A stretch of DNA of 64,000 bases from Hypanus sabinus (GCF_030144855.1 NC_082722.1:26288001-26352000), one strand, 5' to 3'. Positions 15,139-64,000 are shown, counted from the first letter of the stretch. The notes: generated by a model not told the origin, from the sequence alone. Program-made: numbers and translations.

Positions 15139-15249
15139 GCTGAACAAGCACTAGTTGAGCACGCCACTGGCTATGCTTCAACAAACCATAGGGAGAGCAA
15201 ACCATTTCGCAAAGATCGACAACAGGAAGAGCGCGTTATCTATTCCCAG
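15139..15249 (+). CDS. Gene A cytoplasmic exon 2 (phase 0-0): AEQALVEHATGYASTNHRESKPFRKDRQQEERVIYSQ
   Basis: Acceptor ttttctaacag, donor CAG|gtaaag; 111 nt open frame; codon-for-codon homologue of 61119-61229. Confidence 0.85.
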
Positions 15250-15649
15250 GTAAAGCAGAGAGATTAGCGTGAATGTGATACAGATTTGCATTAGGGATAT
15301 ACCAGGGTAGCCGGCCCTTCCGGTACAACTAGCCAGTGGCGCTCAGTCACACCCACGTCACCAATTGGCCTCCAAACCTGTAAGTCATTGGAGGAAACCG
15401 GAGTACCCCAGAGGTTTCATATTTATTTATATAATCACCATCCAAGAGGGAGTTAATTTTACAAACTTGAGCATACCATTGGCACTGTAACAAAATATAA
15501 AGTGGGACATAGCTAATCCACTTTCAGTGAAAAGTAACCGATCATCAGAAGCAACATAACATTCTGATACAAGCATAATATTTTCTTCCATCTGGGGAGA
15601 CTCCAACATGAGGGCAAAAATGTCCATTTTTCTAAATTTTGGGGATTCC

Positions 15650-16444: not shown

Positions 16445-16576
16445 ACTAAGGGAAATGGAGCTGACAAACTGACTTATGCCGTTCTGCAGATTCACGATTC
16501 GAATTACACACAGGCATCTAAACATCAAAGCAAACATACATTGTACGCAGATGTAAAAACATCAAAGAAGCCGTGA
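16445..16576 (+). CDS. Gene A terminal exon with ITIM (LTYAVL) and ITSM (TLYADV): TKGNGADKLTYAVLQIHDSNYTQASKHQSKHTLYADVKTSKKP*
   Basis: Acceptor attacttttacag; phase 0 matches the preceding exon; stop TGA at 16574-16576; AATAAA at 16755-16760; motifs match the ITIM and ITSM consensus. Confidence 0.87.
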   Translation, partial: TKGNGADKLTYAVLQIHDSNYTQASKHQSKHTLYADVKTSKKP

Positions 16577-37476: not shown

Positions 37477-39009
37477 TCAGAGATTGCACTTGACCAGCTG
37501 AGTTCCTCCAGCATTCTGTGTTTGTTACTCTGAATTTCAGAATTTTTTGTGCTTCTGATTTGCTCTGCCGTGAAGAGTGACATGATATACTGGAGGGATC
37601 TCAGAAGCGTTGATGCACAATCGATTTTAGGGTGCACGTAACGACGACACATCAGGATCCAGATAAAAAAGGCGTTTAGCGTACTTGCCCTCTTGGCAGT
37701 ATATTGACAAGTGTTGGGACATCATATTGTACGAGTAGAGAATGTCTAGGCCGGTCTTGGAACGTTGCCGGCTCTTTGGGTCATCCCAGTTAGCACGTAG
37801 TAGAGGTAGAACGATTGCAAAAGAGATTTTATGGGACATTGCCTTGGATGGAAGATTTTAGTGGCACGGAGAGATTGGATAGACGTGGATTGTTTGCTCT
37901 GGAGTTCAGGTGACTGAGGGATAACCTTATGAATTAAAAAAAAACAATTGCTACGGACATTAACATACCGGATGCTCATAGCACATTTCTCAAGACTGGG
38001 GATCCAAATCTGGAAGACGCAGCTGTGAACTGAGAGTGAGAATATCAAAAGGGGAACTGGGCACGGCATGGTTTTCAGACCAAGGATGGTAAGTATATCG
38101 AGAAAGTGTTGTTAGAGGTGTTGGAGGAAGTGGTACCGTACTGCAGGCAGGTATAAGAACGGCTACATGAATATTTCGTTCTGCTTGGATGAAACGGGTG
38201 GAAGAGCCCTCTTCCGTGATGCACTCCAGGATTCAATGTTTTCTGTAAAGATCTACAACAAACTCCTCGTGCAGGATAACAGGAAATTACCAATTGCGTA
38301 GAATAGAAATGCACTAACGAGTCCGCTGATGATATCATGGAAAGCCTTTGTGGTTAAAATTTACATGTGTCTCAAAAATCGATTTGCGGATTGTTGGCTT
38401 TTTTTTAAAGCTCGACGTTTCGGTTGCAGACAATGGATTAAATTTTTAAAAGTGATTTCAAAGCCTTGTCATCACAATTGAATGTTTCTAATGTTGTTCT
38501 GCGAGATCCGTGTTTCGATTTTATGGCGTGTGCATTCTGGAAAGAGAAAAATGAGAGGCTTGACCACAATGTTAAATAAAACAGAGTTTTAAGTTTAATC
38601 TTTAACCATATCAATTGCTGACAGCCTTCCAAGCATGAACAGTTACATCATGAGCATCTATTTGGAGAATGATTGCGCTTTATTTTCAGTTAAGGCCGAG
38701 AATAATGGAATGTTGTCGGATATAGACGTCAGATCACGCCTGAAACTAACAGTGGCCGTTCTATGAATAAAAGTATATTATTTGAGTAATTACTTTCACA
38801 ACCGAGCTTGATTCTGGACTGACATAGCTGTGTAAATGACTTTGGAATGTTATCAAACTTGCAGTATGATGGGTGAAGACATCAGTTCGCTTCGAATCAA
38901 AAAAAAATAATCTAAATGGAAGCAAAAATTGCCTGAAAGGCGAAGACAACCTGAAAATTATAACTTCATCATCCCCATTTATGGCCACGAAAAGTGAGGC
39001 AACACTGAA

Positions 39010-39990
39010 CCTGCGAATCGGTTAGGGTCGTTCTCTGTAACCAGAGCTACCGATTGGGCCTCGTCTACATTGATGAGACCCGACGTAAAGTGGGGACCAC
39101 CTTTTCGAGCATCTCCAGTCCATCCCAAAAAGCGGAATTTGTACTACTGGTCATTTTTTTTTTTATTCCTATCCATTCACGTTCCGACATTTCGATTCAT
39201 GTTCTCTTCTTACGCCTTCATGAGGCTACTCTCAGAGTGGGCGAACAACACCTCGGATTCAGCCTAAGTAGCCTCAAATCTGACGACATAAACATCGACT
39301 TCGTTATTTATCCCTCTCATGTCTCCTTTCTGTTCCCACCTCTGTCCTCTTATCTTCACTGCTCTGCTGCCTATAACCTCCACTTCTGTCCCAATGCCTT
39401 TCCTTTCTCCTAGTCTACTCTCCTCTCCTATTAGATTCCTTATTCTTCAGTTTGCATTTTCAACCTCTTACCTCCCAGCTTCTTACATCATGCCTCCTCC
39501 CAACCGCACACACTCCTTTTCCCCTCCCTCAAAGCCCCGTCAACCTGGCTTCACCTATCACCCTCATCTCTCTTCTGTTCTCAACTCTGTTCTCTTATCT
39601 TTGCTCTCCTGCCGATAACTTCCTCTTTTGTCTCACTTCCTTTCCTTTCTCCCGTAGTCTCCTCTCCTAATGGATTCCTTATTCTCCCGCTCTTTGCATT
39701 TTCAACCTCTTACCTCACGGCTTCCTACTTCATGCCACCGTCCAACTGCACAAGCTTCTCTCCCCTCCAGCCTCCACCACCAAAGTACGCTCAACCTGGC
39801 TTCCCCTATCTCCTGCTAAATTGTCTTTCTTCTCACCGCCTTTTTATTCTGGCATATTCTTCCGTCCTTTCCAGCACTAATGAAGGGACTCGGACCAAAA
39901 TTTTGACCGTTCATTTATTTCTATAGATGCTGCCTGGTCTGCTGAGTTCACTTTGTGAGTGGTGCTCTAGATTCCAGTATCTGCAGGATC
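39010..39990 (+). mobile_element. Penelope-like element remnant (GIY-YIG endonuclease C-terminus and 3' region)
   Basis: GLVYIDETRRKVG (YIGET motif) and HEATLRVGEQHLGFSLSSLKSDDINIDF, resembling the PLE C-terminus; followed by a pyrimidine-rich tail and gaagggactcggaccaaaa terminus. Confidence 0.78.
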
Positions 39991-50384: not shown

Positions 50385-51115
50385 AAATCGGTTAGCGTCG
50401 TCTACTGTAGCCAGAGCTACCGTTGCAGCATCATCTACACTGGTGAGACTAGACTTAAAAGGGGGAACCACATGTTCGACCACCTACAGTCCATACCAAA
50501 ATGCGGAATTTGCTAGTGGCCAGTTATTTTTATTCCTATCCATTCACATTCCAACATTTCCATTCATGTTATCTTCTTACGCCTTCATGAGGCTACTCCC
50601 AGGGTAGGCGAGCCACACCTCGCATTCAGTCTAGGTAGCCTCCACCCGGACGACATGAATATCGACTTCTGCTTGAATTATTTTTTCCTCCCATGTCTCC
50701 TTTCTGTTCCCATCTCTGTGCTCTTATCTTCTCTGCTCTGCTGCCTATAACCTCTTCCGTCCCAATTCCTGCCCTTTCTTCCATAGTCTACTCTCCTCTC
50801 CTGTTATATCCCTTATTCTCCAGCTGTTTGCATTTTCAAACTCTTACCTCCCAGCTTCTTACATCATCCAACTGCCAAACCGCATAGGCTCCTCTTCCCC
50901 CCTCCCTCCAAAGCTCCCTCAACTTGACTTCACTTATCACCTTTCAATTTGTTCTCCATCGACCGCCTTTTTATTCTGGCATGTTCCTCCCTCCTTTCCA
51001 CTCCTAATGAAGCGTTTCGGGGCGAAACGTTAACTATTCATTCATTTCCATAGTTGCTGCCTGGTCTGCTGAGTTCATTTTGTGTGTGTTGCTCTAGATT
51101 CCAGTATCTGCAGAA
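50385..51115 (+). mobile_element. Penelope-like remnant (paralogue of 39010-39990)
   Basis: catctacactggtgagactagac (YTGETR) and catgaggctactcccagggtaggcgagccacacctc, colinear with 39010-39990. Confidence 0.72.
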
Positions 51116-55448: not shown

Positions 55449-55754
55449 CCTCAGAAGGAACATCGGCCAAAGTGGAACAATTCCCTACTATCTTAAATGC
55501 CTCAATCGGTGGAAATGAATCCATGCACTGCAAATTTCCAATACTACGAGATATTGCTGAAATTTCGTGGTGGAAGGAGGGTCAGAACGCATTTATAGAA
55601 CCAGACAGCAGAAATCAGTTCAATGTAATCAAAGGCGGCAGCACTTTTACCCTCCTGAATGTGAGATACGCAGATGTCGGCGTGTATTACTGTCAAGTGA
55701 AAAATCAACAACAAATATTGGGAAATGGAAGTGGCTCTCTGCTTATTGTGTTTA
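55449..55754 (+). CDS. Gene B Ig V-set domain exon with germline J-like G strand (phase 1-1)
   Basis: Acceptor gctttgtcag, donor TTTA|gtaagt; 306 nt: KVEQFP...SMHCKF...ISWWK...FTLLNVRYADVGVYYCQVKNQQQILGNGSGSLLIVF. Canonical Cys-Trp-Cys, D-x-G-x-Y-Y-C and G-x-G-x-x-L-x-V present. Confidence 0.93.
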
Positions 55755-59820: not shown

Positions 59821-60013
59821 AGGACGACTATGTAAGATAATCTGTTCACTCCGTAAGTCCTATCATCACCTTACGACTCGCGTCATATTGCGGCTCTTGC
59901 AAACTTTATTTGTTCAGGCCTGAATTACCCATTAAAATGTTGTACTTTCTTGTCGCACGGTCTTTATATATTTATCTATGTTTCACGGTTTCTTCTATTA
60001 TTTCCATATCTAG

Positions 60014-60115
60014 GAAACTCCTATAAGCTCCTGACTCTCCGAAATGCATTGGTCGGACTGGCAATTACTTTTCTGATTATAATCTTGATAATAATCGGAG
60101 TTATGACAAAATCTG
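60014..60115 (+). CDS. Gene B transmembrane exon (phase 1-1): (G)NSYKLLTLRNALVGLAITFLIIILIIIGVMTKS
   Basis: Acceptor tttccatatctag, donor TCTG|gtaaga; 102 nt; ~20-residue hydrophobic helix preceded by Arg. Confidence 0.9.
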
Positions 60116-60550
60116 GTAAGAACATGAATGACTTGACAAACGTTTCCATTTATTACCTCTGTAGATTAAAAAGACATGATAATGAGAGAATCAAGTTTTT
60201 TGAGGCATTATCCGATTCGCATTCGACAATAGTAATGATAAATAACACTATAATTTTACATTCTCTTTCAATTTTTAATCATTCCTTGTACCAGCTTTTC
60301 AGGCTGTGACTTCCTGCGGTGATTTTACACAACTACCGCCACTTCACTCTTTCAATCAAAATCTAGATGCACCACATTCATGAAAGGTCATGCGCAACAC
60401 ATTTCATGGCCACAATGTGCACCGTACTATTTTGAATACCTGCCAGGAGTTGCATCTTTAGCAAAAAATTTGATTGCAATCTAATGCGCAACTTCAACTT
60501 TTATAACATTATTGCTGTTATTTAATGTGCTGTATTTTTTAATCCATTAG

Positions 60551-60594
60551 TTACTCAAAGAACCTCTGAGGAAGCAAGTCAGAGCGGAGAACCG
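60551..60594 (+). CDS. Gene B cytoplasmic exon 1 (phase 1-0): (V)TQRTSEEASQSGEP
   Basis: Acceptor tttttaatccattag, donor CCG|gtaggt; 44 nt, as in gene A 6534-6577. Confidence 0.82.
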
Positions 60595-61118
60595 GTAGGT
60601 GAGACAGTTTTTCTTTTTGCTTCTCAGAAGGGTATATTGTTAGGGGAATATTATGATCAAGTACAACCTCAGAATGGACATGTCTGTGAGTGCATGAGAA
60701 CCCATGACAACCACTGACCCGCAAAACGTTGCTTCAATGGCCCATAGTGCCCGGGGAGTACAAAGGTGACAGTTGTCCCTGCGGAAACTGTTGGGGAAAG
60801 GATGAAAAGGGAAATAACCGAGGAAGGAAAAATATGACGAGAGATGAGAAACTCACCCTACTTGTAGAATAGACTAAAAATGGTGCTTGGAAGTCAATTT
60901 CAATCTTAAACGATCATAGCGACTTTCAGCATTAGGGAAAACACATTTCGTACCGTTTCTGACACAACATACATCGCAATATCGTTTACTGATGTTAGAA
61001 TGTTATTATGCCGCATTTAACTCATTTACATTTACGTTTTCAAACTCATTTGCTCTTTATGGAATTGGAATTGCATTAGACTCGCCACTAACTGTGTTAA
61101 CGACCCTTTGCGTAACAG

Positions 61119-61229
61119 GCTGGACGAGAGCCAGTTGAACATAACATTGACTATGCTACAAGAAACGTGAGAGAAAAGAAAAGATTTCATCAGGTCAGAC
61201 GCCAGGACGATCATGTTGTCCATGCAAAG
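61119..61229 (+). CDS. Gene B cytoplasmic exon 2 with inactivated ancestral donor: AGREPVEHNIDYATRNVREKKRFHQVRRQDDHVVHAK
   Basis: Acceptor cgtaacag; homologous to 15139-15249 but followed by ctaaag instead of gtaaag. In-frame internal donor CAG|gtcaga at 61193/61194; read-through stop at 61281-61283. Confidence 0.72.
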
Positions 61230-61746
61230 CTAAAGCCAAGGGATTGGGGGCGGACCCGATACAAAATAAGCATTGTTTTTTGAGAAAAAAATGTCTTAAA
61301 CTATAAAAACGCATTGGTCTAAATTTGACATTATGGTGGTTGGTGGTGGTCATCCGCTTCTCTCGAAAGACAATGGCTGATGATGATTATCATCACAAGC
61401 CAGGACGGAAGGTGTGGAGATCCTAAGATTTCCATTCGTCACAATCCGGCTGTCGGCCTCACCAGTGTACACCAAAGGAAAGCTTATGAAGCAATACGTT
61501 TGGCAGCAGCTTGGCTGAAGAAGCTCCCGGAAAGATGTTCAATAACTTCCGGCCGCCTCCGGGGCTCCAGTCCGTATTTGCTGACCGGGTTTCCTACCGT
61601 AGTTTTCGATTCTCCCAAGGCAATGGAGGTAATTACCCATGACTGCGGATCTGGTTCACGAGCACCAGGACGTGTCCACATGCTGGTGGACCTGCATGCT
61701 GCATGTGCAGGGGCGAGGCTTCCTCCCCATCCTCCGTATGCAGCCC

Positions 61747-62059
61747 GAGTCCGAAAGCAGTTTAATTTCCCTGTAAAATAATACATTAAACAATAATGTA
61801 AAACATGGCAACGAAACCGTAGCGAAGAACAAAGAAACAGAAGTATCTGTTTTGTCTCTTTCAGTACAGACTGTTTTAAGTGTCTGTAATCTGAAAATGA
61901 AATTTTCATTTTCAGATTACCGCCATTTAAAACAGTTTGCGCTGAAAGAGACAAAAGAGATACTTCTGTTTCTTTGTTCTTCGCTAAGGTTTCGATGCCA
62001 TGTTTACCATTATTGTATAATGTACTATTATACACGGCAACTAAACTGCTTTCGGACTC
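61747..62059. repeat. 313-bp near-perfect inverted repeat (hairpin), probably a palindromic MITE
   Basis: gagtccgaaagcagttta...ctgaaaatgaaa pairs with tttcattttcag...taaactgctttcggactc; axis at 61903 with essentially no loop. Confidence 0.92.
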
Positions 62060-62134
62060 AGACTGCTTTTTTTGCTGGACGATGCTTTTTTGCTGGACAA
62101 TTGACAAAGTCTCGATATTGAATTACTTCTACAG

Positions 62135-62269
62135 ACACGACATGGTGGAGAAGAAAAGTTGAGATATGCCGCTGTGCAGCTTCCCAAAAATAAAACATCG
62201 GCAGTTAAGCACGGCAACAAGGAGTCAGTGCACGCAGATGAGAAGCTTTCACAAGAAGCAAGAAGCTGA
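62135..62269 (+). CDS. Gene B terminal exon copy 1 with ITIM (LRYAAV), ITSM lost: TRHGGEEKLRYAAVQLPKNKTSAVKHGNKESVHADEKLSQEARS*
   Basis: Acceptor aattacttctacag; phase 0; aligns without gaps through the motifs to the gene A terminal exon; AATAAA at 62443-62448. Confidence 0.82.
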   Translation, partial: TRHGGEEKLRYAAVQLPKNKTSAVKHGNKESVHADEKLSQEARS

Positions 62270-62992
62270 AAATCGAAAGAGGCTTCGGTTCTGTGGACTG
62301 TGAACGAATGCATTCCCAAAGGATTGTTTCCCCTTATCTTCTGCAGGGAGACTAAAGAGCGACGGCTGAAATAATACTGAAGGTTAAGAATATGAAAAGT
62401 GGACATTGTGACATACGGGCGAAATTTCTATCCGACCCTACCAATAAAGATATTTTCAACTACAAAAGAAGGACAGCGATATCCATTTAAAGAGAATCAA
62501 TAATCTGCCCTAGCTCATATACGTCAGCTTGCAGAACAATTATATCGCTGGCTAAATATCATCACAATTTGTGATGTCCTTTTACGATAATTTCCAGTTC
62601 AAGTTAAGCATTAATTCTGGTGAAACAACCACCTGTGAGCTCAGTAGATAAATTAGGTTGCGGAAATCAGACAGAGATAACACAATTATGCGCTTGCATT
62701 GTGAGTCAGAAAAGCATTTAGTAACATTATTTCTCTACTCTCCTAATTAGATTTGCCTAAAATTCATTTTCAGTAAGCAAAGAGACATTCATTTTTCTGT
62801 GAGACAAGACAGGCTCTTACCGTTGAAATTCCATATGAATCAAAAAGGGAAATCTTGAAAAAACGTTAACATAAACCCTGTATAAAGATGTAGTAATCTA
62901 AAATTGATAACTGATGAGTAAATCACTAATTTATTTTACAATCGTTTGATTCAGTTAGTCGCCTAATGCTCGAATTTGAATTATTTTCACAG

Positions 62993-63019
62993 ACTAAAAC
63001 CATGTTGCTCACAAACTGA
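62993..63019 (+). pseudogene. Gene B terminal exon copy 2, frameshifted; encodes only TKTMLLTN* if spliced
   Basis: Acceptor aattattttcacag. Nucleotide homology to 16445-16620, including the upstream intron (tgattcagt.agtc) and 3' UTR. One base shorter before acaaactg, ITIM codons read TSIAL; AATAAA at 63161-63166. Confidence 0.7.
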
Positions 63020-64000
63020 CTAGCATAGCTCTGAAGCTTCACAGTTCAAAGAGCACGTCAGCATGCAAACTTCTACGCAAATATACGCAGATATGCAAGA
63101 AACACATCAAAGAGGCTGTGGAGCTGAGAATGCAGTTGTAATACTGAGCTGTAGACCACCAATAAATGCAAACCCAAGGCATTGCTTCGTTTAATTCCTT
63201 ATGTCCAGACAAAGAATGACAATCGATAACATATATCTGAGTTGGGAAGATAAGAAGTCATTTTCGTCTTCGTCTTCGACATTATTCTGAATCTTTGGAG
63301 CCAATTGACGCTGATAAAAATGTAAGAAACTGAAGGATAGAATCGGTAATAAGTCAGACACCACCATCACGCCTCTCTCTTCTGCCCGGCCATTCAATGT
63401 GATAATATCTGATATGCTCATTCATAATATCCTCCTCTGGCCCATCGCACACTCCCCAATCATTTATAAAAAGGAATTACTTCCAGCAAATACATCCCAA
63501 TGATTCTACCCCAACATTCCTCAGACGGTGAAAAAAAAAACATCCAGAGATTCGCCGCCATTGGCGAGACAAAACTTGGTTAAATTTGAGTAGAAGCCGC
63601 CAATTATAAAAAAAGCTATTCTAGCTCCGCTTACAACCGCTCCACCACTCCAGATTTGTTCGACCTATCACCTGACAGCTACTGTTGCAGACATCCTTCT
63701 CGCATTTATTTATTATCTTCCCTCTACACTCTAATCCCGAGTCGGGATCGCCAAACTTTGACCATTCTCTTGCCTTCACACACATTGTATGGCACATTTA
63801 ATTCATCGAGCAGCTTCTTTTTATTTCAGCCCAAAGAGTTCAGAGACTAGATCGTACTATAAGAGGAAAACAACAAATAAGTGATTGGCATCTCGTAAAC
63901 ATTCACCGAATTGTGCTCCAACCCACAGGAAAACCGATAAATAGGGGTATTGAAATCAGCTGTTAAATTCCATGGGACTGCAGTGTGTATCTTAACTAAA

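Follow-up and report, generated by a model that had tools for sequence, protein, structure and literature searches.

Derived losses of tyrosine motifs and of a splice donor in the cytoplasmic tail of a V(J)-C1 receptor gene from Hypanus sabinus

Gene B, a complete receptor gene in a 64,000-nt stretch of Hypanus sabinus DNA (hereafter, the window), keeps a canonical ITIM in its last coding exon and has acquired damaging changes in its other tyrosine motifs and in one splice donor. We suggest that constraint on one tail exon has been relaxed in this member of a birth-and-death receptor family, possibly with a single-ITIM receptor left, and we put the probability of this explanation at about 0.5. 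The best reading of the locus is ordinary birth-and-death variation of an immune receptor family rather than a special switching mechanism. Two parts of the tail would have come under relaxed constraint in the gene B lineage, namely the penultimate exon and the C-terminal ITSM position. Four derived point changes would belong to this process: the replacement of the +3 Leu by Arg in the first motif, the change from Tyr to His at 61221, the change from Tyr to His at 62231 with the adjacent +3 Val to Glu, and the change from G to C at intron position +1 (61230). Skipping of the exon or use of a cryptic donor would then still bring the last exon, with its canonical ITIM LRYAAV, into frame with the transmembrane region, and the product, if expressed, would most likely be a single-ITIM inhibitory receptor with weaker signalling. 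The features of the locus are collected in Table 1.

Table 1. Features of genes A and B and of a dead terminal-exon copy in the window (positions are counted from the first letter of the window; a slash marks an exon boundary).
Feature	Start	End	Strand	Remarks
Gene A transmembrane exon	5791	5889	+	
Gene A 44-nt micro-exon	6534	6577	+	
Gene A penultimate tail exon	15139	15249	+	Ends VIYSQ/GTAAAG, Tyr codon TAT at 15241; P0012 match 65% identity
Gene A last exon	16445	16576	+	ITIM LTYAVL and ITSM TLYADV (Tyr codon TAC at 16544)
Gene B leader exon	55209	55263	+	Begins MPVDTTV..., ends WP/gtatgc; joins the V exon in frame; homologous to the P0001 and P0152 leaders
Gene B V exon	55407	55754	+	J-like GNGSGSLLIVF end; alternative acceptor at 55449; canonical donor A/gtaagt
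Gene B C1-set Ig exon	57303	57599	+	Pfam C1-set PF07654, 33.4 bits vs cutoff 21; 80-84% identity to Hypanus and Mobula relatives
Gene B transmembrane exon	60014	60115	+	AG and GT sites; hydrophobic core ALVGLAITFLIIILIIIGVM
Gene B 44-nt cytoplasmic micro-exon	60551	60594	+	Phase 1 in, phase 0 out; equals the loose end before 61119 in the spliced X1 contig
Gene B penultimate tail exon	61119	61229	+	37 codons; IDYATR (Tyr at 61152) and VVHAK (His codon CAT 61221-61223); homologues: gene A 15139-15249 and P0151 residues 326-367
In-frame cryptic donor sites	61167	61195	+	AAC/gtgaga and CAG/gtcaga
CT replacing the family GT splice donor	61230	61231	+	Gene A has GT at 15250
Read-through extension	61230	61283	+	17 codons plus TGA (61281-61283); no ITIM
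Gene B last coding exon	62135	62269	+	ITIM LRYAAV 62159-62176; lost ITSM position SVHADE 62225-62242, CAC at 62231; stop 62267-62269
Gene B AATAAA polyadenylation signal	62443	62448	+	X1 contigs 100% identical to the window cover 62282-62402 of the 3' UTR
Dead third terminal-exon copy (B_down)	62993	63130	+	Gene A-type; stop after 8 codons and frameshift

The window is vertebrate DNA rich in LINE-type repeats and carries two paralogous receptor genes on the + strand. The 3' part of gene A (four exons) lies in the window, and gene B is complete with seven exons. When joined, the seven gene B exons can be read through for 363 codons without meeting a stop or frameshift. All eleven splice sites other than the donor at 61230 are canonical, the other acceptors being AG behind a pyrimidine tract and the other donors GT. 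The V exon shows 70-79% tblastn identity to ray relatives and gives Pfam matches to Ig_3 and I-set, with V-set at 25.1, just below the cutoff of 26; its J-like end aligns with GNGSGSQLIVL of relatives. The transmembrane core contains no charged residue, and one Arg is located just outside its N-terminal edge. The assignment of gene B as an activating member of a paired set, with a short tail and a transmembrane Lys or Arg, was rejected on account of this uncharged core.

An exhaustive protein search with the C1 exon of gene B as the query returned 341 relatives. The nearest was P0001 (Hypanus sabinus LOC132407123) with 84% identity to this exon, and P0002 from Mobula hypostoma showed 81%. Other near relatives were P0151 from M. 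birostris, P0154 from Narcine bancroftii and members from Pristis and Hemitrygon. The database names of these relatives are inconsistent and include 'NCR3 ligand 1-like' (NCR3LG1-like), 'SIRP-alpha-like' and 'TCR beta-like'. Judged by its domains and exon structure, gene B is a member of a large cartilaginous-fish multigene family of non-rearranging V(J)-C1 surface receptors with tyrosine-motif tails. It has a single-exon V domain with a J-like G-x-G-(S/T)-x-L-x-V end and one C1-set Ig domain, followed by a transmembrane exon, a 44-nt micro-exon, a 111-nt phase-0 tail exon and a terminal ITIM exon. The sizes and phases of the latter exons are the same in genes A and B, and the protein junctions of P0012 and P0151 agree with this layout. 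In the maximum-likelihood tree based on V plus C1, gene B was sister to Hypanus P0001 with support of 92/92, and the branch lengths were 0.086 for gene B and 0.10 for P0001.

It should be noted that the annotated N-termini of the P0001, P0002 and P0151 models carry repeat-derived junk that matches positions 38245-38388, 39189-39302 and 50556-50678 of the window, and the tail of P0001 stems from reading on into the intron that follows the transmembrane exon. At both ends, public gene models of the V(J)-C1 receptor family are unreliable.

The penultimate exons of both genes are 111 nt long with phase 0 at both ends and are identical at 71 of 111 nt, and family proteins match both of them in tblastn (E 4e-11 and 4e-10). 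Given the identical exon sizes and phases, the conserved flanks and the tblastn matches, this homology is well above chance. The first-pass annotation had paired the end of the gene A exon, VIYSQ/gtaaag, with VVHAK/ctaaag in gene B, and the pairing holds: gene A reads ...RVIYSQ/GTAAAG with TAT at 15241, and gene B reads ...HVVHAK/CTAAAG with CAT at 61221 and C at 61230. It was likewise right in equating the gene A ITSM TLYADV with SVHADE in gene B (TAC at 16544 vs CAC at 62231) and in stating that the central ITIM LRYAAV survives. Set against the ITSM motif TxYxx(V/I), SVHADE lacks both the Tyr and the +3 Val, and TLYADV of gene A fits. LRYAAV agrees with the ITIM motif (I/V/L/S)xYxx(L/V/I); its presence in the protein would depend on splicing of the last exon into the transcript. 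A further changed motif had been missed: in NIDYATR of gene B the +3 Leu is lost, and the first motif in relatives is a canonical ITIM (NLAYATL in Mobula P0151 and VPYAAL in P0007).

The direction of these changes can be read from the relatives. In the alignment, P0151 from M. birostris reads ...QVRRQDEHVVYAK/TRRGSDEKLTYAAL, so that its exon ends in HVVYAK/TRRG with the Tyr kept, and the A-clade proteins Mobula hypostoma P0012 and P0014 have IIYSQ/T and TVYAQ/T at the end of the penultimate exon. At the last site, Tyr is found in Narcine P0154 (AVYAGV), P0012 (TLYADV) and P0014 (AVYAEV). Since the relatives have Tyr at both sites, both His residues of gene B are derived. The two proposed Tyr-to-His changes are thus true losses of a conserved Tyr, and each is a T-to-C transition in codon position 1. 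Among the tail changes unique to gene B are the L>R replacement in the first motif and Y>H. The description of the disarming as 'stepwise' has no foundation, as the sequences do not reveal in which order the changes arose.

The CT dinucleotide is unusable as a donor; hence, the canonical junction 61229/62135 cannot form from the gene B sequence. The three transcript outcomes that had been deduced from a dead donor follow logically, and the sequence agrees with each. Read-through from 61230 gives 18 codons up to and including TGA at 61281-61283, with no ITIM. The cryptic donor CAG/gtcaga after 61193 is present and in frame. Skipping of the exon preserves the frame, as phase 0 is shared by the end of the micro-exon at 60551-60594 and the start of the last exon. 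To these we add a second in-frame cryptic donor, AAC/gtgaga after 61166, which had escaped notice. With a rough donor matrix based on approximate vertebrate frequencies, the cryptic sites AAC/gtgaga and CAG/gtcaga scored 2.4 and 3.0, and the authentic contexts scored 3.5 (that of gene B itself with the CT ignored), 3.7 (gene A) and 4.9 (the gene A transmembrane exon). A protein search with the read-through ORF (61119-61280) gave no match, and one with the Mobula gene B-type tail matched only itself.

In human genetics, mutations of the donor +1 G cause exon skipping or the use of cryptic donors, and these outcomes are expected over clean intron retention. The gene B donor resembles such mutations in the change from G to C at intron +1, the internal symmetric exon and the nearby GT alternatives. 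It differs in being a natural state in the reference genome of a non-model species. By this analogy, gene B would be expected to skip the exon or to use a cryptic donor, and clean intron retention would be less likely. Both of these leave the ITIM exon in frame. As the exon is 111 nt long with phase 0 at both ends and contains two in-frame cryptic GTs, the loss of the donor need not destroy the protein. The idea that having all cryptic GTs in frame is special to gene B was rejected: the GTs are Val codons in the reading frame, so the property results from these codons together with the phase-0 exon design of the family and is not specific to gene B.

The exon boundary at 61229 is supported by a spliced contig. 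Several short contigs of run X1 are 100% identical to the window, which means that X1 derives from the same or a nearly identical genome. A 601-nt contig from this run (X1 record 2) has approximately 91% identity to 61114-61229 and 62212-62343, with the joint exactly after 61229. It joins the micro-exon, the exon at 61119-61229 and the last exon, its upstream loose end being micro-exon sequence. Between the matched parts it has 62 letters, against 77 nt in 62135-62211, and the shortfall of 15 keeps the frame. This contig is a spliced product of a close paralogue or divergent allele. Its joint demonstrates that the exon boundary is real and that the family uses this donor position, a result that bears on the family and not on the splicing of gene B itself. 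The presence of a spliced contig also means that X1, labelled 'DNA?', holds cDNA-like material. Gene B itself is represented in X1 at 100% identity by an intron piece, the 3' UTR (62282-62402) and downstream DNA only, outside the coding tail exons and their junctions.

Within the penultimate exon, five differences from gene B at 61146-61190 (A>C, A>C, A>C, G>C, T>C) are common to the paralogue transcript of X1 and all contigs of X2-X4, the runs of three related organisms. Three of the five restore Mobula-like residues (I>L, D>A, K>N). Because the paralogue transcript and the X2-X4 contigs share these differences, it is gene B that has the derived copy of this patch, which possibly arose by a small conversion tract or by local drift. 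The last intron of gene B includes a very high-copy repeat at 61386-61547 and 61629-61709, where the summed contig depth reached 40,000 in run X2 against about 100 in the flanks; it is probably a SINE-like element common to related species. In addition, a 327-bp near-perfect palindrome (61740-62066; 88% self-complementary), which resembles a hairpin- or MITE-type insertion, is located immediately upstream of the acceptor region of the last exon.

Comparison of substitutions with the nearest relatives bears on whether the gene as a whole is decaying. In the ectodomain, the ratios of B-unique to P0001-unique changes were 11:10, 12:14 and 7:10, depending on the outgroup, and the tail changes of gene B against those of Mobula P0151 were 11:8, 7:10 and 9:6; both sets are protein-level comparisons with small counts. 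The gene B tail is unusual in where its changes fall, not in their number. The absence of an excess of B-unique changes and the intactness of the rest of the gene make long-standing neutral decay of the whole gene unlikely. The first-pass annotation had named neutral decay throughout, including V and C1, as the finding that would speak against its reading; what we found is an intact ORF with about as many unique changes as in the nearest relative.

A younger decay has to be weighed more seriously. It is possible, though we hold it to be less probable than relaxed constraint on the tail exon, that gene B is a young or incipient pseudogene: the loss of the donor would bar the normal tail, the gene would be unexpressed or unneeded, the Tyr losses would be the first neutral hits, and the ectodomain would be intact through recency. 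The CT at the donor is the loss of an essential splice site, and the damage to three of the four tyrosine motifs, plus the donor, within about 250 nt has the look of an early pseudogene. A search for RNA runs on 59900-62600 listed none, and runs of any kind gave small-share matches only. No protein model for gene B was present among the close-relative protein matches. Decay in the locus is also seen in the dead terminal-exon copy just downstream. Against this stand the 363-codon ORF with its eleven canonical splice sites, and the lack of excess B-unique substitutions in either the ectodomain or the tail. Moreover, the core of the ITIM survives, its residues at -2 and +3 being canonical, and there are in-frame bypass routes around the lost donor. 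Finally, four independent hits fall on key positions of the tail and none elsewhere, which argues for site-specific over gene-wide relaxation.

Relaxed constraint on the tail exon is in line with what is seen in the family as a whole. Family tails are modular, and their number of tyrosine motifs ranges from zero to about six. The central ITIM is the only motif kept everywhere in the gene B clade. In Narcine P0154, LTYASL and AVYAGV remain and the first two motifs are absent; the Mobula P0151 model has motifs one to three and stops short of the last; and Mobula P0152 and P0153 end just after the membrane. Replacement of Tyr by His, or other loss, also occurred at equivalent motifs of unrelated members (TAHAQV in P0109, TEHAQL in P0098 and APHIQT in P0044). 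As such losses are scattered through the family, the loss of accessory tyrosines is recurrent and ordinary.

The same distribution could be read as the work of selection. Gene B may be an expressed single-ITIM receptor in which the loss of the donor hard-wires the removal of the membrane-proximal tyrosine exon, and repeated selection for weaker inhibition in this clade of innate receptors shaped like antigen receptors would then be reflected in the independent loss of accessory motifs in three lineages of batoids (stingray, Mobula and Narcine), none of which lost the central ITIM. We consider this unlikely. Similar losses across the family allow relaxed constraint to explain the pattern without adaptive tuning. 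Very improbable, in our estimate, is the more specific proposal that selection, e.g., escape from a pathogen ligand exploiting the receptor, is converting gene B to an attenuated or isoform-switchable receptor. It is true that three lineages of the gene B clade independently lost accessory tyrosines and kept the central ITIM, that Mobula has close relatives with no tail (P0152 and P0153), and that all spliced outcomes are in frame. However, the transmembrane core has no charged residue marking an activating partner, the in-frame property comes from the phase-0 exon design of the family and from Val codons, and similar losses occur throughout the family. Pathogen decoy pressure, which the first-pass annotation had invoked by reference to paired receptors, is unsupported; gene B has neither an activating-type transmembrane charge nor a demonstrated paired partner.

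It is also very doubtful that position 61230 carries C through an assembly error or as a rare allele of the sequenced individual and that a normal gene B has GT and a full tail with two His substitutions: the rest of the donor context is as in the family consensus (AAG/cTAAAG vs CAG/GTAAAG in gene A) and the 91%-identical copy splices exactly at 61229, but single-base substitution errors are rare in modern assemblies (the window has one N gap), the neighbouring derived changes indicate that the exon was already drifting, and, as a weak further point, three related runs covering the region show no difference at 61230 or 61221 among the 40 best-supported of 215 differences.

The gene B receptor has parallels in better-known systems. 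Mammalian KIR, LILR, SIRP and Siglec and teleost NITR and LITR are ITIM-bearing inhibitory receptors of the Ig superfamily that form fast-evolving paired families. Gene B shares with them a type I membrane protein with an Ig ectodomain, a tail of (I/V/L/S)xYxx(L/V/I) motifs and a multigene cluster, in which the number of motifs varies by member and some members are short-tailed or pseudogenes. In contrast to these receptors, the ray ectodomain is built like that of an antigen-receptor chain, from a V domain with a J-like end and one C1-set domain. Some ray proteins are named 'tyrosine-protein phosphatase non-receptor type substrate 1-like' by NCBI. SIRP-alpha (V-C1-C1 with an ITIM tail) indeed has V plus C1-set domains and an inhibitory tail with several tyrosine motifs in common with the ray receptors. 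However, the latter have one C1 domain rather than two and a V domain with a J-like motif, and the likeness is one of architecture and database name.

We searched the literature for a description of the V(J)-C1 ITIM family and found UrIg and UrIg2, which differ from it; the V(J)-C1 ITIM family itself was not described in the literature covered. UrIg and UrIg2 are elasmobranch VJ-C1 genes that do not rearrange; the secreted UrIg carries three C1 domains, and UrIg2 of the nurse shark carries nine (PMC12227049, PMC10751288). The terms 'ITIM', 'ITSM' and 'cytoplasmic tail' do not occur in the text of the UrIg paper. Common to these genes and gene B are the non-rearranging VJ exon followed by C1-type sequence and the origin from cartilaginous fish. 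Gene B differs in its single C1 domain, its transmembrane region and its tail with tyrosine motifs. Proteins with several C1 domains, which occurred among the matches of the C1-exon search, are probably of the UrIg kind. It should be emphasised that this gap in the literature concerns the V(J)-C1 ITIM family as a whole, not the finding on the gene B tail.

The value of the gene B tail is that of a single-base record of how inhibitory-receptor tails shed signalling motifs in a lineage that is among the oldest of the jawed vertebrates. Gene B would, if expressed, offer a naturally attenuated variant with which to ask how many tyrosine motifs such a receptor requires. As such, the change is a routine product of birth-and-death immune clusters and opens no long-standing question.

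Several observations were made on gene A and its surroundings. The transmembrane exon of gene A encodes Cys, Arg and Glu in or near the hydrophobic stretch LILMCAVRGSEILVLLIVLL, despite the ITIM/ITSM tail of this gene; the counterpart of this stretch in the Mobula relative P0012 is FILACAVGGSAILALIILLV. At the end of the penultimate exon, VIYSQ together with the Thr opening the last exon forms neither a canonical ITIM nor an ITSM. In other family members, the next exon supplies Ile or Val at this position, giving TVYAQI or TPYAQV. Reading through the gene A donor (15250-15267) gives VIYSQ-V-KQRD-stop, which would place a canonical ITIM, VIYSQV, five codons before the stop. The similarity between genes A and B extends approximately 45 nt into the intron, and the same frame of gene B has L at +3 and has lost the stop (TAG to TGG).

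The dead third copy of the terminal exon, B_down, lies about 720 bp downstream of the gene B stop and was examined with its flanks (62835-63265). From the acceptor, it reads TKTMLLTN-stop, LTSIAL replaces the ITIM, and IYADM is found in another frame. Compared with the gene A terminal exon and its surroundings, B_down showed 67% identity within the exon, and its two flanks reached 74% and 69%; the corresponding values for the exon used by gene B were 59%, 45% and 53%. B_down may be a relic of the 3' end of a gene A-type gene. In the region of B_down, an X1 contig is 100% identical to the window over 63039-63187.
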